From the NCBI GenBank assembly GCA_024704765.1, contig JAKMXF010000321.1, positions 806,001 to 870,000 of the forward strand: a stretch of DNA of 64,000 nucleotides. The letters are read 5' to 3'. Below the pieces are notes generated by a model. The model saw only the letters and a list, made by a program, of their open reading frames with translations. It searched no databases and was not told the DNA's origin. The stretch comes from Oopsacas minuta (Eukaryota; Animalia; Porifera). The first letter of the stretch is position 1, and each line of letters opens with the position of its first letter. This document shows positions 1 through 48,300 of the stretch, piece by piece. A program made the translations under genes and the position numbers.

Positions 1-969
1 GTATTAGTCTATCATTTTGTCAGATTCCTTATTTTCCCAGATTATCTGCTGTAATAATAACTTTATGTTTGTATTTGTCTATTATAATTAATCTCATTAA
101 ATCATTGAATATTCCAGAAGTGTCTGCTATAAACATAGAAACTATCTAAAATACTAATATAGTACACTTCATTATTGGATCACATCAAACATAAAAACGC
201 GGAAAATGGTTTTGGATTCATTAAAACTCAGGTTGATGTAAGTAATTGGTAGTTCTATTAAGCTGAGCTATTATATTCTCTTGCAGACCATTAACCGCTA
301 CTCATTTTTTGGACCGCGCTGCCGCCCAGGAATGTAGCGTACCCCCAAATGTAAGAGAATTTATCACACCTATCCTTTTGATTCTCTTCTTTCCCTTATC
401 TATTTGTTAATGCTAACGTTTGAAGTCACATACTACTTTAATCATATGTACATACCTTCTATTAGTTCTATTCAAGGTATAAGAATGTCCAGCCGATAGG
501 CTGGTAGTGCAGTTCTAGCCAATTTTGTACCCAACTTCCAATCCAGCCGTCGAAGCCATTTCTCTAGCATCGTTTGAATATTCGTGAAAAGGTCAAAATG
601 CGATTAATCATGCAGATATGGAATTGAATTTGACGGACCGTCGTGCATACTGTCCATGTCATTCGGACATCCCCCTGGGGAGCTCCACTAAACCTCGACC
701 TGAATTTAGAAAATTCCTGAAGCTACTGAAACAGGAAATTCTGACTAAAGACGAAATTTGACTACAACTATAGCTATTTGAACACCATTAATACTAACAA
801 TAATAAGAAGTAAGCCAAATACAAATATTTATAAAGTAGAGAGCTGAAAAATATCCAAATATACATAAACATCCATTATCCTAATATGATGATAGATAGA
901 TACAAGAGTCCTAAGTACGCTAATTAGGCCTAAAGCCTCACCGCTAAACTAACAAGATAAGATAAAATG

Positions 970-3900
970 TCAATGCATTTCGGAGTCAATGAAAATACGT
1001 AGAATAGCATTATCAACCTGTTCTTTAGAAACTTCCTGAAGATTTCCAATCAGATCTCCCAATTCAGTTTTCATCACTTGTTCAAACTTGGACAATTTCT
1101 TTCCAGTATTTATTCCATAATACTTGATTTGGAATTCTTTCATTCTGGCCCAGACATCTCTTTGCCAATCAAACAGACACTTGGTACCATGATTACAACA
1201 ACAACAGTTTGATTTATCACTCATTTTATTATGTCGATTGTAATTCGGAAAGTCTCCATGTGGTGGTGCGTCGAATATATGGATGATTATGTTTCTATTT
1301 TGGGTATGAGTATTCCATTTACATTTAGTGGCTGCAGTCGCTAGACCATCCAATGCTGCTTCTGGATAGTCTCCACCACCAGTAGCCTTAACTTCTTTAA
1401 GAAATTGTTGAATTTCTTCGTGTTGTGAAGTAAAGTTGTTTCCAATCGGAAACATTTCAACAACTGTCTCATCACAGTGATCACGATAGATAACGACTTT
1501 AAAATTTGACATACTTCCTCTTTGTTTGTAGTTGTTAATGAATTTTTTAACAGATTTTCTTGCCTTTTTGATATCTGTATGCATGGATCCAGTTCCATCA
1601 ATAACGAAACAGATATTGTAGTCAAACGAAGATGGCGAATTGTAAATATCATCAACAGAAGTATATTGTGTATATTTCATTTCTATTCCTTTTTGTGCGT
1701 AGTAATGTATGATTGCTTTACCAAACCTATCCCAGATTCGTTCCATTTTTTCTTGATTACTTCGCTGTAAAGCTAGAAACCTATATTCCTTAGGGAGTTC
1801 CCAGTTCCAATCCATTTTAGACTTTTCTTTGAACTGACCCCAATTTAACATTTTACCGTGTAGAATAAGTTCAGTATCTTCTTTATAGTCGTCACAAGTG
1901 AATAATACTACAGATTTATCCCTGTCATCCTTCCACACCTTACCCCCCATTGAACACATTTGGTGACCAGTCTTTATCTGACATTTCCCATCGTTTGGAT
2001 GGAGTTTTCTATCACAAAATTTGCCACAACTTGGACATTGGTTTGGACAACCGAGTACATCTTTTTCATAGATTTCTTTGATATGTCGCACCATTATTCC
2101 AAAGTCTTCACGAGAAATTTCATACTTGCAATCACGAACAACTCGCGTAAATTCTGTGATGTACTCGTAGATATTGAATATATTTTCAGAGTTAAACATT
2201 TTAGTGTTTTCCAACTTTTTGAAGAGATCTTCACTAAGAACACAATGTCGTGAATTTGGTTTATTGCATAATATGTAAGTGTCAGATTTTTTGATTTTTA
2301 CTCCATCTAATTCGAAAATGTCTGAAAAATATTTATTGAATTCTTCTGCATTGACTTTGGGGTCTAGATACATCTTTAAATATGTTACCATTGCTTTGAA
2401 CGGACTTTCTCTCTCCTTCGCCTTCTGTTCGGAATTATTCTTTTTGCTGTTTTGCAAATCAATTACATCAAAGTTGCTATCTGAATCGAATGCATTTTGC
2501 TCAGAGTTTCTCTGTTCAGAGCATGATTCAATCAAGTCATTTGTCATTGCTTCTAGAACCTTTGTAATATCATTCATGTGTTTTACAAAATCAGCTTTCA
2601 TCTGTGAAACGATTATATTGTATAATTCATCTTCAACTTGACTCCATTTATACTTGAATAAGCTCCTGATTACCTCGTTTCGATTACATATGTATTGGAC
2701 AACAATATGGTTTGTATCAAAAACTTTGTCATCAGATTTATACAGCTCCTCTGTAATTATATGGTTTGCTTCAAAGAAGATGGTTTCGTTTGAGAAATAG
2801 TCTTTTCGTTTGTTGAGATTGCATTCGATAAGTTGCCTAGACATATTTGATATTCCTCTTCCTACACCTTCTATGAAGTCCACCGCGAACTTTTGAGAGA
2901 TTGCTTTATCGCTATCTCTCATTTTCTCACGATCCCATTCCCCTCTTACCATTTTTCGATTTTCGATTTTTTGCAAAAAGTACTGGCAGTAAGTAATTTT
3001 CTTCTTTTCCTTTATCTTTTTATCCTCGGATAGTTTATTCCTTGTTCTTTCCCAAATAGATTCGAATGCAAGAGCAAACACGAATGTTCCTATTGTCCTC
3101 TCTGCGGTATTACTCAACTTTGCATGAATAAATCCGATTTCATAGTTTACAATTTTGAATAATTGAGTTAGGTAGTTAATCATCTCTTTGACTGTTGCTG
3201 CTGAAATATTTGGATCTTTTTCGATGAATCTTTCTATTTCCTTCTTAATGTTATTCAATAATTTACTCCATGTGCTTCTTTTGGTCTTGTTTGGATCTTT
3301 TAACTGAGATACCAACAATAAGATTTGACTTTCTTTGTTCAATTTGCCCCAAATTATGTCTGGATGGTTGAAGTATCCTGAACAATATTGGATTAGTGGG
3401 TGGCATTCCTTTGGGGCTAATCCTATGATTTCAGGGTTCTTTTCTGGTTGAATCGATTTGCAATTTCCGAACAAATAATCTTTACTAAAGTACTCATAAT
3501 CCTCTTTCCCTATGTAAGGAGTCATTTCCTTGATTACTTGATTATTTCCATTGGTAGCATAGAATAACCTCTCTGACCCTTCGATTTGAGTTGGCTGACA
3601 TTGGAATCTTGTAAGAGTATCTTCAGAAATGTCTTGTATTATTTCTTTCATTTGAAAGTTCATACTACGAAAAAGTTCGTAGGTTGTTGACATTTTTTCC
3701 ATTACCTTTGATTCCATCATAAATATCGAATATAAGTTGCTAAAACTCTGATAAATTTCAGTTTCTTCTTCTTCTTTCAAATCACAATTTCCGAAACATT
3801 CTTCCCAGGTTGTTTCGAAAGCATGCTTTTGTTCTTCTACATTGATTTCTAGATATTTATCCACGTTTTTAATGATTAATTCTTGAAATTTTATCATGCT

Positions 3901-6900
3901 CTGAGATAATTTAATCTCCGTAAGAACTGCATTAATCTGAAATTTGAAGCTATCTTCATACTCCTTCCTCACCATATATAGTAATTTAAGTAGGTTTGAT
4001 TTCGCTTCGCTACAAATACGAAACAATTCTTTGAGTTGCCTATCATCTTGACATTTCTTCAAAAGGTCTGCCACACAACGTTCGTAGTATATATTGAAGG
4101 TCTCATCAAACTTTAGCATTACGCTTGTTAGTTGTTGATTTGAGTTCACTTGTGTTTTTATGTCTTGTATTTCTTGGGTTAGTATTTCTGCAGTTTGATC
4201 GAAGAGATCTCTTTTACTGTAAATATATTTTCCCATTATTTCAGAGATTATACTGTTGAGCAATTCACTGCATTTAATCTCTTGATAATCATCATACTTC
4301 ACAATATCTTGATAATTGATTATTGTGTCCCAAACAGTGCCAGACATTTGTATCCACTCACTCATTGTTTGAAAGTGTTCTATCTCATTAGTTTTCATGT
4401 TATCTAACTTGTCAATAATAGCAAGCCTCAATTTTGCACATTTTTCTGCAAATGAAATAGTCGGAGATAATTTGATTACGTCTGAATCAAATAGTTTAGA
4501 ATTTGGTTTATTCATTGAATCCGAATTGAATGCTGAAGGAAGGATGAATAGATTTTCTTCTGTAATTTGAATTAAATCTGACATCTTAACACCCTCAGTA
4601 TCTGACATATAGGATTCTGTATTGATGTTATTCATCAGAATATTCATAGATTCTAAATGTTTCCCAGGATCAGGATCTGCTTGTTGATTTAATACAAAGA
4701 AGATTTTTGGTGGTGCTACTCTCTTAACTTTCAGTTTGTTTAGAGCATATGCACATATCTGTAACATATTCTGCATTTGAGTGCCTATATCTCCTTTCAC
4801 ATTTATGATTACAACTTGTGACACTGCAAGACAGAACAATACCATAGTTCTGTCAAAATGAATAATAGACGTATCTTGCATACTCTTCTTCTCAATATCA
4901 TTCTTCATCTTTTTCCTTTCAATAGCATCCAAACCTTCTGTATCAAGAATTAACAATTGATGTGTACCATTAACCTTTCGACTTGATCTAGAGAGTGATC
5001 CGTAAATTCCTCTGGTGCATCTGCCTGCACTGGTTAAGAACTTACAGCCAAAGCAGTAGTTCAATAATGTAGATTTTCCTGAACTTTGTGGTCCGAATAT
5101 GCTTACAACAATTGGAGCTTCTTTTTCCTTATTCATTTCTCTCTCACCGGCCAATAGCGAATCGATTTCTTTATCAAAGTATCTTAGATTATCACCATCA
5201 ATTAATTCAAATGCCTCTCCCATTTCCACATGTTTGCTGTAGTTTGATGCAATTTTTTTTTTGAAGTGGTATGCTCCCCTAAAACCTAAATTCCCATACT
5301 TATTATACAACAATGTTTCTCTCCAAAGAATTTCTAGAGTAAATTTCTCTTTATTTTGTTCAATCACATTCTTAGGGAATAGTCTATTCGATAATTGAGA
5401 AAGTTCCTGTGATAATTTCCACAAAATCAGTGTTGAACGATTAGTTTCTAATATTTGGTTGTAACTCTCAACAACTTCACCCATATGCTGATTGAGAATT
5501 TGTTGGTAGAGTAACTGTCTTTCTTCATTCAGTTCATCAATAAGTTTCTGTTCTGTTTCATAACATGATTTATAGAAACAATTCATATATTTCACGAACA
5601 AAGGATAATAATTGAAGGAGGAGAAATTCAATTTATCAGACTCTTCTGTTTCGTTGCATATGTGTTCTGTAATCTTCGTTATCAATTGGTTGTCTGATAT
5701 GATAGCATCCAGACTTTCATGCTTAAGATCTCCTAGTACATTTTCTAGAAATTTCCCTCCAAAATTTTTTTCAGATTTCTGATGCAAAATCTCGTAACCA
5801 ATTTCTCTTAATCTTCTCTTTACAGATTGGATATTGGTGTTTGTGTTGGTGAGATTCGGAACGAAGATTAATTTTGCTGATTTATGGATATAGAAATCTT
5901 CTTCTTGTCTCTTCAATTCGGTTTCATTATAATCTCTGATAAGAAAATATACCCATTTGATTGTCCGTGTTGATTTAAGGGTGTCAATTTCCAACAATGC
6001 GCCACGATTAATGTAATCATTATAACTGATGTGGACTAATGCAATATCCAAGTGTTGAGATATAGCATTGATAACCTCTAATTTGGCATTTCCCTGACAG
6101 TCAAGGTATGCCCATTTAGTGGATTCACTCTTATCCTCCACTTTTTCACCGAATAGATTTTTTGTCATTTGAATGTCAATCGAACCTGAATGAAATGCAC
6201 TCTTTTGAGAACTTGCGTTAACAAAGTCAGTACCAAAAGTCAAATCTAGCAGATATGATTTTCCCATCTGATTCCATCCAGCTCTTCCTATTCCAAATGA
6301 GATTAGTCCATTAAACGATTCCATAGAATACCACAACTCATTGGTTGGTTTGAAACTTATTGCATTATCATTTTGAGAAAGTATAGGATAGTAGAATGGC
6401 ACTGGATTACTGAATGAATAGTGTTCAATACAGAATCCTCTTAATATGGGGTCAGATAACTGGAATATCATATGAAATATTTCATGATTTGTGAGAGATA
6501 TATTACATGTTTTTGCAAGGATTTGAGTGATATCATCAAAGGGAAGACTACACTTTAGGTAATAGAATGTTAATGGTAAAAGTTGTTGAAATATTTCCTT
6601 TGGTGTTTTTCCTGGCAACTCTGCATCTTTCATGATTTCCTCAAATGAATTTACAATTACCATTCTATATGAGTGGAATTTCAGTTCTTCATTTCCGAAA
6701 TGTTCCACTATGTTATGAATTTGTTTATTTTGTTCAATTTGGCATTGTTGAATCAGTTTTTGATCTGGATGATACTGTTCTAGATAATTTCTTATTACTG
6801 ATTCTACCTTTTGTAATTTGATGCTGAGTTCTACGATATCATTTGCACCATATTGATTGATATAGGAAATGTCTTCAGATGTTAATTTTGTATCTAACTC

Positions 6901-32886: not shown

Positions 32887-33888
32887 ACTGCTACACTCAT
32901 GTCAAGTTCTACAAGTATGTCCAAAAAAGTACTACCAAAACACAGGAAAATGAAATTCAGTTGAATTTCTTGGATAATGTTTTGTATTTGCTCCATCATT
33001 TGGTCTTGTTATATACAATTATACCAATTATACAATACACTAGTGTGCGATATAGAGCATGAATGAGTATATAATCAGGTCGACTGATACATATATAGAT
33101 AGTCGCTAGCAAATAGTAGTAGGTTATTCAATATTCGCTAGCGAAGCGCACTTGTAAGAGATTTTTACTATATTAGCTAGAAACGACGGTTGCTTATTGC
33201 CACAACTTCTTTGAATGAGTTTTGGAGTTGTCGAGGTAGATTTTTACTGGATTTCCTTAGAAACAATGCCCTGCTTGTCTACATAACAGTGTTCAGAATG
33301 GGTTATTCACTAGCAGATTGTAATTTAATAACTCCGTTCAACGCGTTGTTAAGGATTTGTCCTACACACAATAGACTCTTGGGTGTACAGCATCAAAAGC
33401 TCTATACTTATAGAGTATATTTATGATGGTAAATTGGTAACAAAATAGTTCGTTTCATAGATTAATTAGTCAAAGTAGTGATTTACGTAATTACGCAATT
33501 ACTAACACCCATTCTGGGAAAGCTTATGTACAAGTTATATCAATACCAGGAAAATTTACAAATCTTAGATGTTCGAATAGAATTCAAATTAAAACCTTTC
33601 AATTAGGAAGAACTGCCAATAAAGTAACGCACAATTCGATTACAAAAGCTGAAGACCAAGCAATCAATGCACTAGCTGGTTACAAATGTCCTGATACAAG
33701 GTAAGGGCTTCCTACTAAAAGTTGCTATAGATTCGCAATAAGCAATGTTATATTACGCTGTAAGGAACGATGCATCCAGATGGTGGCATACTGCAAGCCT
33801 TCCATATATAGCATCACACAGCTAGGAACTATAAATATGGCACGGCTTTATGAAGGTAGATTACATATACTTATTACTCAAGGAAAGG

Positions 33889-34698
33889 ATGATGAACTCT
33901 CTCTCAATCTTATTATTAATTCTCTCATTTACTCTAACGGTATTGAGCTCATCTCTGTCTCAGCAGTGTGCGGGCAGTAACCAAACGTGTCAATTGCTAG
34001 ATACATGCTGTAATTTCAAGGGGAAAGACAATACAGGTTGCTGCCCTTTGAGCAATGCAGTATGTTGTAAAGATCTAGCACACTGTTGTCCTCAGGGCTA
34101 CAAGTGCTCAGATAGTCCTTTACTATGTGAACGACCCAAAGCCAGCCCTGTTAGAAAAACACAGATTCAACAACACACAATCCCTCTACGACGACTAGAG
34201 AAGTACGTGAGTAAGCAGATGATACAGGGAGTAGAGTGTGATGATCAAATAAGTTGGTGTGCTGATGGAGATACGTGTTGTAAACTTGAATCTGGCATGT
34301 GGGGATGTTGTCCGTTGACGAATGCACGTTGTTGTGAAGATGGTGAGCACTGCTGCCCGAAATATTATGAATGCACGAAAACAGATGGTCTTTGCAACCA
34401 AACAGTAACTATGTATAATCATCATATTATACCAGCAGGTATTAAGCAAAAAGCTATGCATATCAAAGATTTCATAGCAAAGCAATTGAGTGATGCTATG
34501 TGCGCAGATGTTTCTGAATGCATACAGAAACACAGCTGTTGTGAACTAGAGGAAGAAGAAAATTACGGCTGTAGTGAAGTTTCAAACGCTATCTGTTGTG
34601 CAGATCGTAAGTCATGGTGCCCTGAAGGATATTCTTGCGATCTCTCCCAAGAGGAGTGCAAACAAGTTACCATTGAAGTTGAACATATAGACATTTGA
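33889..34698 (+). CDS. GRN: Progranulin-like secreted protein with three granulin domains, single exon, ~269 aa
   Basis: The likely start is the ATG at 33889, in frame with the listed ORF, followed by a signal peptide (MMNSLSILLLILSFTLTVLS). Two complete 12-Cys granulin motifs (C-C-CC-CC-CC-CC-C-C, with GCCP..NA.CC.D..HCCP) and a third 10-Cys motif at 34501-34659. Confidence 0.93.
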   Translation: MMNSLSILLLILSFTLTVLSSSLSQQCAGSNQTCQLLDTCCNFKGKDNTGCCPLSNAVCCKDLAHCCPQGYKCSDSPLLCERPKASPVRKTQIQQHTIPLRRLEKYVSKQMIQGVECDDQISWCADGDTCCKLESGMWGCCPLTNARCCEDGEHCCPKYYECTKTDGLCNQTVTMYNHHIIPAGIKQKAMHIKDFIAKQLSDAMCADVSECIQKHSCCELEEEENYGCSEVSNAICCADRKSWCPEGYSCDLSQEECKQVTIEVEHIDI

Positions 34699-34933: not shown

Positions 34934-36103
34934 TCAGTATGTCCTAATAACGTTATTACCAATACCGAGTCTGTAACGTGGTATCGGCCTTCTAAACTTC
35001 CAAATTCTAAAAGCGTTTACAATTAACACAACAACGTAGATAGCAGCTAATAACAAGTAGAAGAGAGACCTCATTAATTGGATCACAAATAGAGTTATGT
35101 GTTGTAACATTTGGTAAACGTCAGCCTCCGTTTCAGACAGAGAAATGTGAACATTAATTCCGTATGCTTGGAAGAAACAAGTATTCGATACTATTGTTTC
35201 CACCCACATATGTATTGTGTATATTAAATAGCGTAGGAAGTAGAATTGACATGTCCACCAAATAGTAGGAAACAAAACTTTATAAGATTTGAGCTGATAC
35301 CTAGCTCTCTTTAGGTGAATATACTCATTGTCTCTCTTCAGTTCTATAATCCATTGATTGTACCTGTCACAGAATCTACGGTATTCCCTATAAATCATAA
35401 CTAAATTGAACTGGAAGAATAGACAGAATATAGGATGAGATGCTAATAGTGTGAGTGGATGAAAATTAAGGAATACGAATATAACTCCTTGTATTATACC
35501 AACAGGGATAAACTGATATATCTTCAGCTCAGAAACTCCAAATTGCTGATACAACAGAGACTGCATAAGGACCAGATTCTTCCTCCAAATAGACAAATAC
35601 AAAACCCATACCAATAACAGAAGTAACGCACTGTATATGGGAGATATATTAATGTATACAAAGTTGTCTAGCCCTGGATCGTAAGCTTCTCCTACTGCAG
35701 AACCTCGAGCTAATGTACAGTTTCCAGTGAATTTGAGATAACTAGGATGATTACGAATAGGTTCATCATAGATTGCAACGAATAAAGTCAGAAACAGATT
35801 CAATAGAAAGTATACCAGTTCTATGAGAGCTATTATCAAGAATAGAATTAACTCATATTTCCTGTTTGTGTGATTACTGAGTATGCTCGGATCACAGTCA
35901 GAGTTTGTTCCTGCTTTTATAAACTTTAGAACTCTTTTCAAAGCAAAACATGCGTATACCAAACATATTGCAAGGATAACGAAATGGAAAAATTGGGCAT
36001 ATATGTTAAAGCAAAATAGATAATAGTTTGCCCTCGCGATGGCGAAATAATAGTCTTGCATTAGCGAGATGTTATTAAGATTATTGATTAATTTAGCGTC
36101 CAT
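34934..36103 (-). CDS. Orphan 7TM membrane protein, divergent family member 5 (389 aa, intronless)
   Basis: Seven TM segments; IELVY (TM2 Glu), GNCTL (ECL1 Cys), LVW (TM3), basic ICL3 ending SYK, ETIVSNTCFF (ECL3 Cys), tail PRYR. Confidence 0.8.
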   Translation of the reverse strand: MDAKLINNLNNISLMQDYYFAIARANYYLFCFNIYAQFFHFVILAICLVYACFALKRVLKFIKAGTNSDCDPSILSNHTNRKYELILFLIIALIELVYFLLNLFLTLFVAIYDEPIRNHPSYLKFTGNCTLARGSAVGEAYDPGLDNFVYINISPIYSALLLLLVWVLYLSIWRKNLVLMQSLLYQQFGVSELKIYQFIPVGIIQGVIFVFLNFHPLTLLASHPIFCLFFQFNLVMIYREYRRFCDRYNQWIIELKRDNEYIHLKRARYQLKSYKVLFPTIWWTCQFYFLRYLIYTIHMWVETIVSNTCFFQAYGINVHISLSETEADVYQMLQHITLFVIQLMRSLFYLLLAAIYVVVLIVNAFRIWKFRRPIPRYRLGIGNNVIRTY

Positions 36104-36621: not shown

Positions 36622-37722
36622 CTACGATAAAAAACTTTCCTTCTCATCACTCATACTAGAAAACATCCGATACCTGTACTTAACCTTCTTAGCGCTGTTA
36701 GTAATACTCTTCTTAACTACCCAGATATTCAAAACAAGCAGCAAGCAGTATGCTACAATGTTAATTAACCTCGCAGTTAAAATTATCCCAAAGTTAATAT
36801 CACCGATAAGTCTACTAATTTGTACATCAGGTTTGAACTCCAATGAAATTCCAAACGTTGCATGAAACCAACAAGAATTGAATGTAAGAGTCTCCAACAC
36901 AAGATACAGGTTAAAGAACACACTACTACTGAGGTAGTATAACTGTAATGCAATGAAAATGATAGGAATTACAATGTTATAATCTCTGTACAATTTCTCT
37001 TGCTCATCACTCATATGCTTATTCCTTGTATGATAAGCCTCATTAACTCTACTACCCATGGCTATCTTAAACTTTCTACTCATATACCATGCTAACAGTA
37101 TATTCATCTGTCCTATAGCAGACTGAATAAACACCCCAATGAGGGATGTCCATGGGAGAATACGTAGTGTGAATACTATTATTCCTATTAATAAGCCTAC
37201 CAATACCCATCGCTTTAGTATATTAGGTTGAAGTCGCCCTTGACATACGTGAGTTAGGTGCAGTAGTGATACAGCATAAAACCATACCATCATCATTAAG
37301 AGGGTTGTAGATTGTGTACGTAGGAACACTAGGAAGATTTGTCCGATATTTGTACTGTAGACATGAGCTAAATAGGTTGAGCCATCGAGACTACAGTTAT
37401 CATTGATTTCAATTGGCATGCTTTCGTTATAGTTCCAAACCATTTTGAATATACCATACACATTGTAATCAAAGAAATAACCGAATTCACAAATCAGGAA
37501 TGCTACGAATAGAAAGTAGCGGATAAGATATTCACGATAAGTGAATATTTTCTGTTCATCTATAGAGTCAATACGTGATTTACGATGATAGAATGTTATT
37601 AAATTGTACAGTACATGGAAGAGCCAGTAAATGAGGAGGAGAGTATGTAACCCACATAGAAGTTGAGATGAGTAGTAGAGATAGGAAATAAATTGGTTTT
37701 CAAAATTATTAGCAACTCGCAT
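36622..37722 (-). CDS. Orphan 7TM membrane protein, family member 6 (366 aa, intronless)
   Basis: ICEFGY..YNVYG, DNCSL, MVWFYAVSLLHL, AMGSRVNEAYH, FFNLYLVLETLTFNSCWF, tail YRYR...SFLS. Confidence 0.85.
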   Translation of the reverse strand: MRVANNFENQFISYLYYSSQLLCGLHTLLLIYWLFHVLYNLITFYHRKSRIDSIDEQKIFTYREYLIRYFLFVAFLICEFGYFFDYNVYGIFKMVWNYNESMPIEINDNCSLDGSTYLAHVYSTNIGQIFLVFLRTQSTTLLMMMVWFYAVSLLHLTHVCQGRLQPNILKRWVLVGLLIGIIVFTLRILPWTSLIGVFIQSAIGQMNILLAWYMSRKFKIAMGSRVNEAYHTRNKHMSDEQEKLYRDYNIVIPIIFIALQLYYLSSSVFFNLYLVLETLTFNSCWFHATFGISLEFKPDVQISRLIGDINFGIILTARLINIVAYCLLLVLNIWVVKKSITNSAKKVKYRYRMFSSMSDEKESFLS

Positions 37723-38999: not shown

Positions 39000-41375
39000 T
39001 CACGTACTAGCTACGTCATTATTCAACTCATCAGATCTCTTAGAAACAGGTCTCTTTTCCCCTGTTCCGCCCCCCTCATAACGTCTAACTACTCTGTCAA
39101 ATGCTTCTGCACACACCTCAACCAATTCCTGACTGTCCTCCTCGTTACATTGGAACACGTGACAGAAGTTACGTCCTCTTTTACGATTTATAAACGCGAA
39201 TATTTTCTTGTTATTAGGGTCTAATGAGCAGAATGATATTCCTTCTATCTTGACTGTAGCTACATGTGTGTTGGTAGATGTATCAAATAGCTTTATACCT
39301 TTAGGCGTTACTATGATTTTCATTTTAACACGGCCCTTATTCCCATACTTCTTCTTCAATTTTTTGACAGCACTCCTCACAACCTCTAAGCCATACAGTT
39401 GTTCTACTTCTATGTATCCGTATCCTCTCACGTCAAAGAACCTTATATTAGCTAATGATGCAGTCTGTTTCATACCTCCGGGCATGCTGAGTCTATCTTT
39501 GTTTAGTTTCTCCAATCTAATCTGAGGTAACTGACGTCTGACAAGGTAACCTCTCCAACAGGACTGTATATAGAGGGCCGCAGACTGATAACAGTGGAAG
39601 TTATCAGATTGTTCGAATGCTGGGTTAGAGAAATCATACTTCAGATCATCAGGTTCATATATAGGAATATGTGTGCTAAGTCTTCTGGTTGCCTTCAATA
39701 AGTGTTGTCCTATCTGCTGGTCTGAATGGGGTATAGTAGCTTTAGACCTGACAGCCTATAATTAAACATATAAATAACAGCTCAGTACTCTGGTATATCA
39801 GATTCATGGAACAGGCTCCTAACACTCCTCCCATGATTAAGCTAAGTTCTAAATACATATATCATCTATACTATTAAGACGCAATTAATATGTATGTTTG
39901 TATTTTCGGAATTGATTGAAGAAACTGGAAGATCCCAAGAAATCTTGATGAGTTTGTTCTTAGACTTCGTCTTGCCGTCGAGGAAGAAACCTACTGCTAT
40001 TGCGGACTGATGTTTCACTAGAATTCATTGGGATGGGAAAAGATTTGTTGAGGATCGACTTGCAATTCTTGCTTCAGATGGCCCGAACTACTAAGAAGGG
40101 AATTACTGGGAATTCCTGGGCTGATCTTTAGCCTGGCTCGGACAAGTTCGAGTCTTGGACGAAATTCACACCTATTAAGAAATTATGACATCATTGTCAC
40201 CTCTTTGGATTTTCGAAAATCACCTTAATGGCCATTGCTCAGCCAATATACATGATAAAAGTTTGAAAATTTAATCACCAGGTACCCCACAATATACCAC
40301 ATGTTCTGACGTCATGATTTAGGCCAAGGGCTAACTCATCATGTGATTATTACGCCATCATGACTGTACAAGAAGTGCCCAGATAACTAACCAAAAGCCT
40401 TGTAGCAGCTCTAGTATTACCACAGAAAACCATTAAATGGAATTTGGATGGACCATGGATAATCAAAAATTTAACCTCGAGCTCGAGGCATATAGTGCTG
40501 AGTATATCCGGTCGCATAGCGACCAAAAGCATTTCAAGAAGTTAGCTGTTTAATACTTAAGCTCATTTGAAGCACTAAGCTGTCGCACAGCGACCTAGCA
40601 AGCGAAGTGCGCTAGTTATGTTATAAGTAGCAGTGTCTTATTTCGAATCATCTGCCCAGGTCGGCTGAACGATCCCGGCGCCCTGGCTGCCTCCCCTGCC
40701 GACGACCCTGGTTATTTCACCAATTCGAATTCTAAGAAAAGTATATTCCAAAACAGTCTACAGGATAAATACGATCCTCCAACCAAATTCATAGATGCCA
40801 ACCTGACCAATCCGTTAGATGTGGTATCCTATATCAAAATGTACAGTTATGGAGCAATACCTTAGAGACCCACAGATAACCCGTGAGAGTTGACATCTCT
40901 GAATATTTAGGAAAACTCCGTTTCTGGCCATGTGACTTGATTAACCATGGTTAAGCGGAGTCTACTGTAATTCTGAATTTATAGTTACCTGATTATCATA
41001 TCCTGTATCATCATCATATTGTGTATGAACAGGACTGTGAGATATATCATCTGATATAGATAGCATTGTATGCTGTGTGATTGTCTGAGACTGCTTTTCT
41101 GCATCCTGTGAAGTATTAGACTTGGCATTCAGAAATTGTGCGTCATCAAAGTCCAGACGGGACGAGGCGTCCTTCATTGAAGGGGTAGGTATATTTTCTT
41201 TGATACGACTGTGAGGATGTGATTTCCTTCTTAGAGATATATCCCGCAAAAAAGATGGATGTTCACGGAAATATTTGTAAATAATATAACTGCCTAAGAT
41301 GACGACAGCTATAAGCAGTGATGTTCCGATAATAGCTGTAACCACAATACCGGCTATTGCTGCAGGGCTAGACAT
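39000..41375 (-). CDS. Predicted two-exon membrane-anchored IQ + PTB domain adaptor, 380 aa
   Basis: Exon 1 is 41375-40989 (129 codons: TM helix, then a basic stretch) ending CAG|GTAACT in phase 0. Exon 2 is 39755-39000, following ttaattatAG in phase 0, and encodes FSNPAF, an IQ motif (IQSCWRGYLVR) and a PTB fold (F.V..YG..EV...G...V..AVKKL...I.V...GIK......ISFCSLD....KIFAFI....CHVFQC). The PTB exon is secure; the splice to the TM exon is inferred. Confidence 0.72.
39891..40325 (+). mobile_element. Interspersed repeat family A, copy 3 (in the intron of the TM-IQ-PTB gene)
   Basis: Starts tgtatgtttgtat...gaattg.ttgaagaaactggaag as at 9608; core at 40134-40202; 3' part aligns with the inverted copy at 11667-11855. 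Confidence 0.65.
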
Positions 41376-41550
41376 GCAGCTTAGAGCTAATTACAAGTTG
41401 AACAAGTCTTAGAATGAGTATAAAATGGCGTGGTAGTGAGAAAAGGTAGCTGGGGAGATGTCGAATGAGTCTGAGATATCCCATTGACATTTCGATGGGA
41501 CAGCCAATTGCATCGAACCTAATACACTCCGAATGCAGGTTATACATTGA

Positions 41551-42792: not shown

Positions 42793-43968
42793 ATGTTACC
42801 TAACAATACAATTGAATACTATGTTGCGGGTTTAATTAACAGAGGGGTTAATGCAGCATGTGGTCCCGTGGTAGTGATAACAACATTTTTTCTTCTCATT
42901 CTATCATTCTGTTGGTCCTTATACTTCCTAACTGGCGTAATAAAAGGGTTTAGAAAGAAAGAAGTGTATATTAATCGAGACATGAAAGAAGAAGTGATCA
43001 AAAGTATCCTACAAAACCAAAAAAATAACCAAATTAAGATTTTCATACTATTCGCTATTTGTGCAAGTGAGTGTACTTTCATCGTTTCGTTACTAGTATT
43101 TTCATGTACTCATTATTTAAGAGATAATGAAGTAATAAATCCCAAAAACCTATTCTCTTCTCCATTTCATAAGATATCACTCACGTACTCTGACTCTCTG
43201 TATTCTACATGGAGTCGTTTCCAAAGTACTGTCTGTTTCAATTTCTTCCTCTGCCTTCTATTGTTAATCCGTATACTCACACAGTACATGGCTAATTGTT
43301 ATAGCTTTTTCCACTCAAACTACTCTTTAAAATTCCAATTCATTCAATCTGTTGTCATGCTAATCGCCTTGACCTTAATCGGGACATTTCAAATCACAAT
43401 ATTTCTCTACAGAATACTTTACAATATCTACATTATTTACCAGTTTATATTATTCCTACGGGCCTCTACAAATCTAAGAAAAGTTTTGTATAAAAGATTT
43501 TTCGATGCAAAGGTCCATGAAAACCAGAGTCTACATGTTATAGCATATTATAAGAGAGCACATAAAGAATACAAAATAACTTCAGTTCTGTTAGCTCTTG
43601 CATTATTAGGACATATCACTAGTGTTTGTATTGTCTCACTCAATCAACTAATTGTTGCTCTACTCTATCAGCCTGGAAAATTCGCAGATGTTATTTTCGG
43701 TCATGGTCTTAACATTACATTGAAAAATCTACCTATTTCCCTCAAGGCTTATAACCAATTAATCAGTTCACTGAGCGAAATATCCTTTACACTAGGCATG
43801 TGCATGCTTGTTTCTCCTTACATTTTTGTTACTTTGAACTACATTGTATTCTTTACGAAGAGACGGATTAGATCAACAAAGTATAGATTCACATATTTCT
43901 CTGATCCGGATAAAGTCAAAGCACTTATTTCCAAGCATAACTACACTTATACAATAAATCATTTATAA
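42793..43968 (+). CDS. Orphan 7TM membrane protein, distant subfamily member 7 (391 aa, intronless)
   Basis: NNT sequon and seven TM segments; W..Y in TM1, Glu in TM2 (ASEC), Gln in TM5, KRFFDAKVH (compare SRVIDAYH), EYK before TM6, tail KYRF...ALIS. Lacks the ECL1/ECL3 Cys pair of members 1-6. Confidence 0.78.
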   Translation: MLPNNTIEYYVAGLINRGVNAACGPVVVITTFFLLILSFCWSLYFLTGVIKGFRKKEVYINRDMKEEVIKSILQNQKNNQIKIFILFAICASECTFIVSLLVFSCTHYLRDNEVINPKNLFSSPFHKISLTYSDSLYSTWSRFQSTVCFNFFLCLLLLIRILTQYMANCYSFFHSNYSLKFQFIQSVVMLIALTLIGTFQITIFLYRILYNIYIIYQFILFLRASTNLRKVLYKRFFDAKVHENQSLHVIAYYKRAHKEYKITSVLLALALLGHITSVCIVSLNQLIVALLYQPGKFADVIFGHGLNITLKNLPISLKAYNQLISSLSEISFTLGMCMLVSPYIFVTLNYIVFFTKRRIRSTKYRFTYFSDPDKVKALISKHNYTYTINHL

Positions 43969-45339: not shown

Positions 45340-48300
45340 CTAATAAGAAAATTCTTTTGCTTTGTAATGCGAACTTCTGTTCTGTTTGTATACAGAAATA
45401 TAAGGTTGAACGCTTTGAATAGATTCTTTCGAAGTTCGACGTGGTTGATAAGGTGAATTTACAGGTGTAATATACCTAGAGCTCTTTGTTATAGGTGAGT
45501 AAGGCTCATCCCTGAGGGAGTGTAGAGAGGTAGATCGTGTCATGAAAGAGTCCCTTTTAATAAGAGGTTTCTCATCGTCAATAGACTGTACTCGCTTTCT
45601 AATATTGAATCTGTCTGATAGAGTTATGGCTGGGTAATTTATAGTAGTGCTCTGCTCCATGATGTCTTCCATGCTAGAATTGATACTACGAGTACTTAAG
45701 GAAGTACGGCTGTATCTGTTCTCCAAACTATTCATTGGAATATAGCTAGTAGGAATTGAGTATTGGCGATTTACGTAATTTCTGTTTGAGTTATTATTGT
45801 TATTGAATTGGGTGTTCCTTACATCTACCTTGAAGTGCTCATCGTATGCGCGAATGCTAGTTTGCACTTTTTGCAAATCTAATTCGTAGAATCTGAGTCT
45901 GCGGCTTGCAGAAATGAGGTCATGAGCTGCATCAGCTGTAATTTCCATTATCTCCGTATCCTTATAATTCGGATAAGAATCGGTATAAGCAATTGTTTCA
46001 TGAACTGGACTCTCAGAGATAGACTGACATGACGTAGGAGATTGGAACAATTCAGGATTATCGTGTACAGTAGCTCGTTCTTTCTCAGAACTACTACTAC
46101 TGTTCTTCTTCATACGAGGCATTGTCCTCGCGTAGATATTCTCATAACTCTCTTTCCTAGTAGAAGAAGAGATGGAGAGAGGCGAGTAGATGTGATTAGG
46201 AAGTGGACTTGTTGGTCTAGATTTATTTCCTCCACTGTTCTCCTTATCCAGCAGACTCTTGATATTATCAGAACTCTTACTCTCGTTCTTTGCAAGCTCC
46301 ATGTAAGATTGAGTCCGAGATAAGCCGGAACGTCCCGTTGTAGGAGAATTCATATTGGATAGATATCCAGATTCTAGCGAGGCTAAGTGTGCTCCCAGAA
46401 AGGGCTTAATTTCACCGTTAGGTGTGCTAGAGCGACGGCTTAACCTAGGTGAGGGGGATCTGATGGTATCATAATTCTGTAAGGGATCTTGTTTGTGTAG
46501 CATCCTCTCCGAGTAAGAACCGCTGTTGGTATAGCTCTCGTTTAGAGTAAGGGTCTTAGAAGTACGTGGAGAATTAGACTTATAAACAGGGGTAGAAGGT
46601 TCACTTGTAGTTACTCCAGCTGTGTCACTTTCATCTAAACTATTATTACCGTTATTGTATTTGTAATTGAAGTATTTTATTAGGTTCGATGTTCTATAGT
46701 TTTGTTCTGAGTTATTGGTGTGTTTAGTGGATTTTGAAGTTCTTGGAACTTCTAGTTTGTTAGAAGTTGGTGAGCCGGTGGTGTTACGAGAGTATTCAGT
46801 TCGTCTTTTGATTTTTGATTCTTGAGCTAGATTTCTTGTAGTAGAGAGGACATCTTTTTCTGGAGTTTTCTCGGCTTTCGAAGAAGATTCCAAAGAAGTA
46901 GATTCATCTGGTATATGATTTTGTTTATCATACGAGGTATTTTTCTGTTCAACCTCGTGTGTGGGAGATCCTTCTGCTACATAGTCAGATCTTTTGAATG
47001 GTATCCCTGGTACTCCGAAGAAGATATTGGTATCAGAACGCTCAGTTTTTCTTCTCATTCCTTTGGTGTTCCTCCTCTTACCATCAGTGTTATCATTTTG
47101 TTGCCTTTGATCTTTGTCAATTGTTGCTGTATCAGTTTGCTTTTCACTGATATCTCCCTGTGTAGATTTCTCACTAGATTCTACTGGAGACTTCCTGGAG
47201 TAGAGTCTGTGCGTATATCTAGATTCTCTCCGTTCTTCTTTGGGAGATGAAACGTGTGTGAATGAACTTTTCTCTTTTTTGTCTGTCATATCAACAATCT
47301 TATCAATTTTTTGGCTCACAATTGACTCAATCCCTTTGTTCTCAACAAACTCTCGTTTTGTATCATCAATTTTAGTCTCATATTTAGGCTCTGCTTTGTA
47401 GCTGGTATCAACTTGTTTTATGATTTCAGACATCGAGTCGCTCTGAGTCTTAACTAGGTCAGTTATGTCAGGCTCTTTCTCCTCAAGGATATTGTGTTCT
47501 GACGGAAATTCAGGTGTTGCAGGCAATGATCTCATAGGTGGTTTGTAATCTGCTGACATGTTTGAACCGAGGTTGGTTGAGATATCGCTCATATCACTGA
47601 AGCCACTTGAAGTAGAGCTTTGTATTGGACTGTGTGCGCTCTGCCTTTGATCCAATGTGATGTCATTATATGTTTTTAACCATTGATGACGTAAGCACTG
47701 CTCTGCATCTGGACGTCTCCTATAACAGTATAATGACAATTAATGCAATAAATTTTGCTAATTAAGCTGACAATATATGACTAAATAGAGCGAATACTAG
47801 CAACAATTCTGAGAAGGCTTATAGACAGAAAACTTACTTTGGATTCAGCACAAGTAGATTTCTGATAAACTCTTTTGCATTCTGAGAAACGCCTTCGAAG
47901 ACTTCATCATCAAAGTCGTATTTAGCCTGAGATACGTTACTTAGAATATCTGCTTGTTCCACAAGTCTGGAGACTTCTTCATCTGTTGAATCATCATCTT
48001 CGGGGAGGAAAGGAGAATACCCACAAAGTCTGTAGAAAGAAGGAATATTTGAAATGTAGAAACCATAATTAATTAGAAATTTAATATAGTTTCTTCAACG
48101 TCGATTGGATATGTTGGAAATTATTTATTAGCCAATGTGAATATAAATTGTACGTTAACATATTTCAATTGTAATCCCTCATATGTGTAACATTAATTTT
48201 TGGCTTCAACAATTTTAATTAATTTCTGCCCTATTAGCTCCGATATTAATTAGTACCCTGACTGTGTCTTGGAAATATGTATCCACATTCATTGGCTTCC

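Follow-up and report, generated by a model that had tools for sequence, protein, structure and literature searches.

A membrane-anchored PTB-domain protein with an IQ motif in the glass sponge Oopsacas minuta and its relatives in other sponges

Dab, Numb, ARH and GULP are the textbook soluble adaptors that link NPxY-bearing receptors to the sorting machinery. GULP, a soluble protein, has an N-terminal PTB domain followed by a coiled coil and a proline-rich tail, and we know of no membrane helix or IQ motif in ARH, Dab1/2 or Numb. Vertebrate lymphocyte adaptors of the LAT, PAG and NTAL type expose few extracellular residues, lack an ectodomain for ligand binding and cross the membrane by one helix, behind which short docking motifs lie in a long disordered tail in the cytosol. 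The locus described here lies on the minus strand of a 64,000-nucleotide (nt) stretch of the genome of the glass sponge Oopsacas minuta (GenBank assembly GCA_024704765.1, contig JAKMXF010000321.1, positions 806,001 to 870,000; hereafter, the window), in which a first-pass annotation had joined two open reading frames (ORFs) into a hidden gene for a protein with a transmembrane helix, an IQ motif and a PTB domain. It is close to certain that the two ORFs form one expressed two-exon gene, LOD99_11801, which is a member of a sponge family. Taken as a whole, the explanation that one gene encodes a single-pass, membrane-tethered PTB adaptor, for which a switch is proposed below, is considered probable.

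Gene structure and transcript support

The ORF list at the locus contains an ORF at 41375-40962, which starts with ATG and reads MSSPAA followed by a hydrophobic stretch and a polar tail, and an ORF at 39698-39000, which encodes the IQ motif and the PTB domain. Reading of the DNA places a donor, AATCAG/GTAACT (the slash marks the cut), after position 40989, giving an exon 1 of 387 nt and 129 amino acids (aa), and an acceptor, ttaattatag/GCTGTC, before position 39755, giving an exon 2 of 756 nt including the stop codon (251 aa), in frame with the PTB ORF. Both splice sites are in phase 0, the GT..AG intron is 1233 nt long, and the joined product (129 + 251) has 380 aa. The 9-mer CAGGTAACT is found at two positions of the window, 30800 and 40983. 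A word search with exon 2 retrieved the GenBank entry hypothetical protein LOD99_11801 of O. minuta (P0001; 380 aa, 100% identity), the sequence of which is exon 1 directly joined to exon 2 (...YDNQ/AVRSK...). The single two-exon gene of the first-pass annotation, with its phase-0 donor and acceptor, coordinates and product length, is thus borne out by the DNA and by the deposited protein, but the gene is not hidden, because the identical 380-aa model is already in GenBank. The features of the locus are as follows.

41376-41388, minus strand: 5' untranslated letters that follow a splice acceptor (AG at 41388-41387, the point at which a contig of sequencing run X2 changes to 11 foreign letters)
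40989-41375, minus strand: coding part of exon 1 (129 aa), comprising the start codon, the membrane helix with its basic flank and the disordered linker, up to the phase-0 donor CAG/GTAACT
41268-41366, minus strand: membrane helix, about aa 4-36, after an N-terminus of 3-5 residues and followed by KYFREH..RRK (hydropathy 2.70; AlphaFold helix 4-38)
41124-41156, minus strand: glass-sponge block LDFD[DN]xxFLNA, aa 74-84 (alignment A3)
39756-40988, minus strand: intron of 1233 nt, GT..AG, full of high-copy repeats (joint 39754->40988 in X2; CT..AC, cut +1)
39000-39755, minus strand: exon 2 coding part, 251 aa and stop codon, with NPAF motif, IQ motif, PTB domain and short tail (from the ORF, splice sites, Pfam and LOD99_11801)
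39612-39638, minus strand: YDFSNPAFE, aa 169-177, a motif of the FxNPx[FY] type (N and P invariant in 12/12 aligned sequences)
39528-39584, minus strand: IQ motif IQSCWRGYLVRR, aa 187-205 (full match to IQxxxRGxxxR; Pfam IQ; within a predicted 37-residue helix)
39069-39440, minus strand: Dab-like PTB (PID) domain, aa 235-358 (Pfam PID, sequence matches to solved structures, AlphaFold, Foldseek)

Four sequencing runs of one sample cover the stretch. Three of them behave as DNA, since they show flat depth on unique sequence and huge depth on the intronic repeats. In X2, the depth reaches about 950-6300 over exon 2 and 1200-4000 over exon 1, versus roughly 100-280 in the intron and flanks. A contig of X2 skips 1233 letters between 39754/5 and 40988/9, and the CT..AC ends of the skipped part on the plus strand correspond to GT..AG on the gene strand, that is, to the predicted junction. 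Transcript data across the 40989/39755 junction had been proposed as a check of the gene model, and this RNA-like contig has exactly that joint. According to the O. minuta genome paper, RNA-seq and DNA-seq come from one project, and RNA hints were used in the gene models (PMC10280926). In the intron, repeats at 39840-39933 and 40122-40685 have a depth of 1,500-37,000 in the DNA-like runs, versus about 70-400 on unique sequence, and show many variant joints. These high-copy repeats fill the O. minuta intron, which accounts for its length of 1233 nt here versus 59-135 nt in two other glass sponges.

The same arrangement was found in four other glass-sponge assemblies (L001, L003, L005 and L006), in each of which an ORF lies directly upstream of the PTB ORF. 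These upstream ORFs start with MS[ST]PA[AG][IL]AGIVV, continue with a hydrophobic helix, YKY and a basic flank, and contain the blocks LDFDNxAFLNA and DPDQ.SQS.TQ.T.LS. They end in D[QK], after which comes a phase-0 donor (GTAAC, GTAAT or GTGAT), and the PTB ORFs open behind a pyrimidine-rich tract and AG, with introns of 59, 135, 466 and 1796 nt in the four loci. Identity to the O. minuta copy ranges from 41% to 51% for exon 1 and from 73% to 83% for exon 2, as calculated from alignments A2 and A3; alignment A1, in which exon-1 fragments were mixed with full-length rows, smeared the fragments and was set aside. A protein from the Vazella pourtalesii Trinity transcriptome (P0165, 388 aa) consists of the L006 exon 1 joined to exon 2 at DQ/AVRSK, and is independent transcript-level support for the junction from a second species. 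The exon-1 block LDFD[DN]xxFLNA of glass sponges resembles the downstream YDFSNPAFE without the proline, and was placed by MAFFT against DFSNPAF; it is possibly a degenerate second copy of that motif.

A sponge-wide family

A search of 1.84 billion protein representatives with a profile of the exon-2 part yielded 668 hits, five of them below 1e-30; the best 150 were examined for architecture. Matches that also span the NPxF-IQ part were P0010 (446 aa), encoded on a JGI contig where the neighbouring genes correspond to those of the Geodia locus, P0011/P0158 (508 aa), from JGI 3300046527 and Logan, and P0057 (an uncharacterised protein of Sycon ciliatum, 750 aa). Word searches added proteins of Geodia barretti ('GULP1') and Halichondria panicea ('LDLRAP1-like') as well as an Ephydatia model, and the Halichondria and JGI members carry the automatic ARH/LDLRAP1 name. 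All full-length members share one layout: 1-20 residues, a helix, a basic flank, [FWY]xNPx[FY][DE], a first IQ motif and the PTB domain. The [FWY]xNPx[FY] motif, which reads FDNPTY in P0158, is the most conserved feature outside the PTB domain, and in every full-length member the first IQ starts exactly 17 residues (19 in glass sponges) after the N of this motif. In Geodia, the helix, DWSNPLF and the first IQ share one exon and ORF, so the link between anchor and IQ motif is there independent of any splice. The architecture is not peculiar to the O. minuta locus; it is found in glass sponges, demosponges and a calcareous sponge, and is present in databases under the automatic names given above. 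Among the best 150 of the 668 hits, no other protein was found that combines an N-terminal helix with IQ and PTB. Two candidates that looked similar by hydropathy (P0092 and P0104) were rejected as models of the ARH- and GULP-like kind whose ends are apparently junk.

In a tree of 99 PTB domains, which is unrooted and in which the Sycon branch is long, 11 family members fall on one side of a branch with support of 100/95; the clades of ARH-like, Numb-like and GULP-like domains, like the multi-PTB kinases, lie elsewhere. Orthology to GULP1/CED-6, which the name of the Geodia protein implies, is contradicted by the C-terminal position of the PTB domain, the membrane helix and the separate branch. 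Orthology to ARH/LDLRAP1 is likewise contradicted by the separate clade and by the lack of a clathrin box or AP-2 beta-appendage motif in the disordered parts; the sole matches to these patterns (Geodia, Halichondria) fall inside the PTB helix. A literature search for the combination of transmembrane helix, IQ and PTB, for sponge GULP and for transmembrane adaptors with PTB, NPxF or calmodulin retrieved nothing relevant from a library that is incomplete. The membrane-anchored PTB family, found here only in sponges, is undescribed in the searched literature, in agreement with the first-pass annotation, which had recognised no described protein of this kind.

The members differ in several details. 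The demosponge proteins P0006, P0010, P0188 and P0150 share a conserved DPF[AT] about 25 residues before NPxF and an LCF just after the basic flank of the helix, both of which are absent from glass sponges. The Ephydatia model (P0189, Em0018g1209a) starts with MLCF, a stretch that in other demosponges comes after the membrane helix; the model looks truncated, and probably lacks its first exon or true start. In P0057 (XP_065180890.1), the IQ-PTB unit is duplicated (IQ at 135 and 369), and NPAF precedes the first unit only. On the JGI contigs L007-L013 (3300046527, 3300046521), an unbroken ORF of 508 or 446 aa makes up the gene, in contrast to Geodia, where several introns divide it; L011 and the Geodia locus share a common gene order.

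Domains, fold and membrane topology

Exon 2 matches the Pfam family PID (E-value, 1.4e-13; 51.6 bits against a cut-off of 20.9; exon-2 residues 108-225), with the PTB and PID_2 profiles matching too, and the Pfam family IQ (E-value, 2.3e-6; 27.3 bits against a cut-off of 20.3); exon 1 has no significant Pfam match. The sequence IQSCWRGYLVRR fits the IQ consensus [FILV]Qxxx[RK]Gxxx[RK] and is kept in all members, with two copies in demosponges. In the AlphaFold model, which was computed with a 51-row alignment, a helix at residues 4-38 (predicted local distance difference test, pLDDT, 93-97) is followed by disorder at 52-162, a 37-residue helix at 182-218 that holds the IQ motif, and the PTB domain at 235-358 (pLDDT >95). 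The latter consists of seven strands and a C-terminal helix (334-358), a PH-like beta sandwich capped by a helix. The order of membrane helix, linker, IQ and PTB that had been read from the sequence is supported by hydropathy, Pfam and AlphaFold alike; the [FWY]xNPx[FY] motif before the IQ had been left unused in that description.

The solved structures closest in sequence to the PTB domain are those of GULP1 (6itu; E-value, 3e-13), Numb-like, Numb and ARH. Foldseek gave template modelling (TM) scores of 0.80 for GULP1 (6itu) and 0.84 for ARH (3so6), and 0.80-0.89 across the PTB domains of GULP1, ARH, Numb and Fe65; matches of 0.7-0.9 (target TM) also include Numb-like (3f0w), AIDA-1 with an NPxF peptide (8ym2) and Dab. 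Core positions V246, A258, S303, C305, D308, F315, C327, F330, A347 and F348, which include the peptide-pairing strand and the Phe of the C-terminal helix, are retained and are near-invariant in 51 diverse PTB domains. A basic stretch, KKLKKKYGNKGRVK, hints at possible binding of NPx[YF] peptides and phosphoinositides by the PTB domain. A feature search of the ESM Atlas gave no usable match.

In both sequence and fold, the domain thus comes nearest to that of GULP1/CED-6 (6itu), a Dab-like PTB that binds NPxY without phosphate. In contrast to GULP, the sponge PTB is C-terminal and lies behind a membrane helix, NPx[FY] and IQ, and its branch in the tree is separate from the GULP-like clade. The PTB domains of ARH/LDLRAP1, Dab1/2 and Numb are of the same subtype, as indicated by the 3so6 match and by the Numb and Dab matches, and bind FxNPx[YF] tails; binding of NPxF is described for the PTB domains of Numb and AIDA-1 (title of 8ym2). 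However, ARH, Dab and Numb are soluble, form separate clades and have clathrin-box, DPF/NPF or AP-2 beta-appendage motifs, none of which is present in O. minuta. The overall layout is that of the LAT type, and, as in LAT, cysteines lie where the helix meets the cytosol in the demosponge, Sycon and P0158 members. Adaptors of that type have a CxxC palmitoylation site next to the membrane and tyrosine docking motifs but no folded domain, whereas a PTB domain stands at the C-terminus here; glass-sponge members have no juxtamembrane cysteine, and no sequence relationship was found. The resemblance is therefore one of layout, and membership in the LAT type was rejected on the grounds of the folded PTB and the absent helix-end cysteine in glass sponges.

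Several observations bear on the start codon. The X2 contig departs from the genome at 41388, at an AG acceptor 11-13 nt before the ATG, and continues into 11 foreign letters (one contig, few letters) that do not occur anywhere in the 64-kb window, which rules out a 5' exon within the window as their source. In each of the five glass-sponge loci, an acceptor-like AG stands 11-22 nt ahead of the ATG. The site at 41388 is probably a spliced-leader or 5'-exon junction, and fits the trans-splicing reported for glass sponges, although this is weak evidence when taken alone; Aphrocallistes vastus, also a glass sponge, is reported to have a trans-spliced leader of about 37 bp (PMC10282587). The ATG of L005 and of L006 is preceded, at a distance of 2-3 codons, by an in-frame TAG. 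The N-terminus MSSPA is conserved among the glass-sponge loci, and at most about 20 residues precede the helix in the transcript protein of Vazella and in the models from Geodia, Halichondria and Sycon. Given the in-frame stops, the acceptor upstream of the ATG and the foreign leader, the ATG at 41375 is taken as the true start of a protein with no ectodomain. The upstream ectodomain exon for which the first-pass annotation had allowed is rejected on the basis of the in-frame stops in two species, the conserved MSSPA, the short N-termini elsewhere and the foreign leader just before the ATG.

In a 19-residue window, hydropathy peaks at 2.70 at exon-1 residue 10, and reaches 2.4-3.6 in the N-terminal helix of all full-length family members. 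The N-terminal side is uncharged in O. minuta, and neutral or acidic in most members; the flank behind the helix is basic, with a net charge of +3 over 15 residues in Oopsacas, Vazella and Sycon and +10 in P0010, and with KKR or RRR directly after the helix in Geodia, Halichondria and P0158. In Halichondria, an NIT N-glycosylation sequon precedes the helix. One N-terminal hydrophobic helix with a net positive C-terminal side gives the predicted topology of a single-pass protein with no cleaved signal peptide; by the positive-inside rule, the basic residues after the helix would place the N-terminus outside, and all of the remainder in the cytosol.

Proposed role, neighbouring genes and alternative explanations

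Because it has no ectodomain, the protein is likely to act as a tethered adaptor on the cytosolic side of a membrane rather than as a receptor; at that membrane, tails of the NPx[YF] type, and perhaps also phosphoinositides, would be held by its PTB domain. The family-wide fixed spacing suggests that the motif and the IQ helix work together. Throughout the family, moreover, a Dab-type PTB domain is paired with a motif of just the kind that such domains bind, which points to a self-interaction. We propose that the NPx[FY] motif may bind the PTB domain, either of its own chain or of an adjoining molecule, and that this contact may be controlled by calmodulin, or by a similar light chain, bound to the adjacent IQ helix. 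Judged from the IQ motif, gating of the protein by calmodulin is plausible, and the complete self-ligand switch under calmodulin control is put forward tentatively, as a possibility that has less in its favour than against it; a plain tethered PTB adaptor is much more likely. More speculative still, and rather unlikely, would be a scheme in which these sponge-specific adaptors are closed or chained in one state and able to capture receptors with NPx[YF] in the other, and in which calcium, through calmodulin, shifts them between the two. A precedent for control of a PTB ligand groove by a neighbouring segment of the same chain is Mint1/X11 (title of 4dbb); there, however, the blocking helix is C-terminal to the PTB domain and a calmodulin-type motif plays no part, and self-binding in the sponge proteins is a proposal only.

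Several points weigh against this reading. In AlphaFold runs on the full protein and on residues 150-380, the NPAF region has a pLDDT of 54-84, with no added strand, and docking of NPAF in cis on its own PTB found no support in either run, which is a weak negative. No clathrin box, DPF, NPF or AP-2 beta-appendage motif is present in the O. minuta protein, and because of this absence it is not a classical endocytic adaptor by motif content. The IQ motif alone is no proof of calmodulin binding. Binding, localisation and topology are predictions from the sequence and the model. Finally, the assignment of X2 as RNA derives from its depth profile and is not on record.

The three multi-pass membrane genes in the vicinity (34934-36103, 36622-37722 and 42793-43968) are paralogous, and two of them have orthologues in place in other glass sponges. 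Downstream of the PTB gene, the order of 36622-37722, 34934-36103 and a granulin gene (33850-34698) is kept in three other glass-sponge loci, and the neighbour orthologues are 51-63% identical between glass sponges. The multi-pass proteins have no significant Pfam family, and the conserved tails of the two with orthologues read KVKYRYR.FSS.S.EK..FL and PIPRYRL. No NPx[FY] occurs anywhere in the O. minuta copies; in two other species, AYNPAFDN is found at residue 131 of the neighbour, not in the tail, and the O. minuta equivalent is AYDPGLDN. Upstream, a serine-rich ORF of 799 aa (45340-47739, minus strand) has a C-terminal end, ..VQPYISVYKQNRSSHYKA.., that is conserved in the upstream neighbour of L005. 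In Geodia and on the related JGI contig, the neighbours are the unrelated genes LIM, TM231, TIM21 and tRNA deaminase.

Other explanations have to be set against the tethered adaptor. That the two ORFs are separate genes, for a small membrane protein and a soluble IQ-PTB adaptor, might be suspected from the 1.2 kb between them and from an in-frame TTG in the second ORF, but for practical purposes it is refuted: the X2 junction contig and the Vazella transcript protein both join the two parts, five species share the donor and acceptor, both in phase 0, across introns down to 59 nt, a single Geodia exon contains the membrane helix, NPLF and IQ, and the gene forms intronless full-length ORFs on JGI contigs. 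A dedicated partnership with the neighbouring orphan multi-pass genes, whose tyrosine-containing tails the protein would bind, had been raised in the first-pass annotation for the flanking putative seven-transmembrane genes. Its appeal lies in the order of PTB gene, two paralogous multi-pass genes and granulin that three other glass-sponge loci retain, and in the conservation of the tails KVKYRYR.FSS and PIPRYRL. We regard it as very improbable, as the linkage holds only within glass sponges and gives way to unrelated neighbours in Geodia and on the JGI contig, the neighbours fall into no Pfam family, NPx[FY] is absent from the O. minuta copies, and AYNPAFDN in the two other species lies outside the tail. 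Moreover, since the upstream serine-rich gene is syntenic too, the gene order is ordinary glass-sponge collinearity and not evidence of partnership.

The remaining two alternatives concern the cargo and the membrane. The protein could itself be cargo, its FxNPx[FY] acting as a sorting signal that is read by soluble PTB adaptors or by the FERM domains of sorting nexins and drives internalisation or recycling, with a separate role for the PTB domain. The form of the motif, which is that of the low-density lipoprotein (LDL)-receptor internalisation signal (FDNPTY in P0158), the DPF of demosponges about 25 residues upstream, of the type that binds the AP-2 appendage, and the failure of AlphaFold to place the motif on its own PTB would all fit; yet the constant motif-IQ distance of 17-19 residues is left unexplained, and glass-sponge members have neither DPF nor another endocytic motif. 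This explanation is given a minor share of the probability, and is compatible with the tethered adaptor rather than exclusive of it. Less probable again is a tethering or scaffolding role at an organelle, with the helix anchored in an internal membrane, the endoplasmic reticulum or the mitochondrial outer membrane. A short N-terminus, one helix and a basic flank are found in Tom20 and other signal-anchored proteins of the outer membrane, and the sponge protein, with its very short N-terminus, single helix, basic flank and no ectodomain, is built in the same way. However, its helix is long (about 28-33 residues) and very hydrophobic (2.4-3.6), properties that favour the secretory pathway and the plasma membrane, and the sequon of Halichondria stands before the helix.

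The family presents a new arrangement of known parts, in which a PTB domain is combined with its own membrane anchor, a ligand-type motif and a calmodulin-type motif across at least three sponge classes. The automatic names 'GULP1' and 'LDLRAP1-like' that its members carry mislead comparative studies of phagocytosis and lipoprotein uptake. Glass sponges have calcium action potentials, which control feeding. If the self-ligand switch is real, it would be a simple way of coupling calcium to membrane sorting in early-branching animals, and would provide a calcium-gated sorting or scaffolding switch in animals without nerves.

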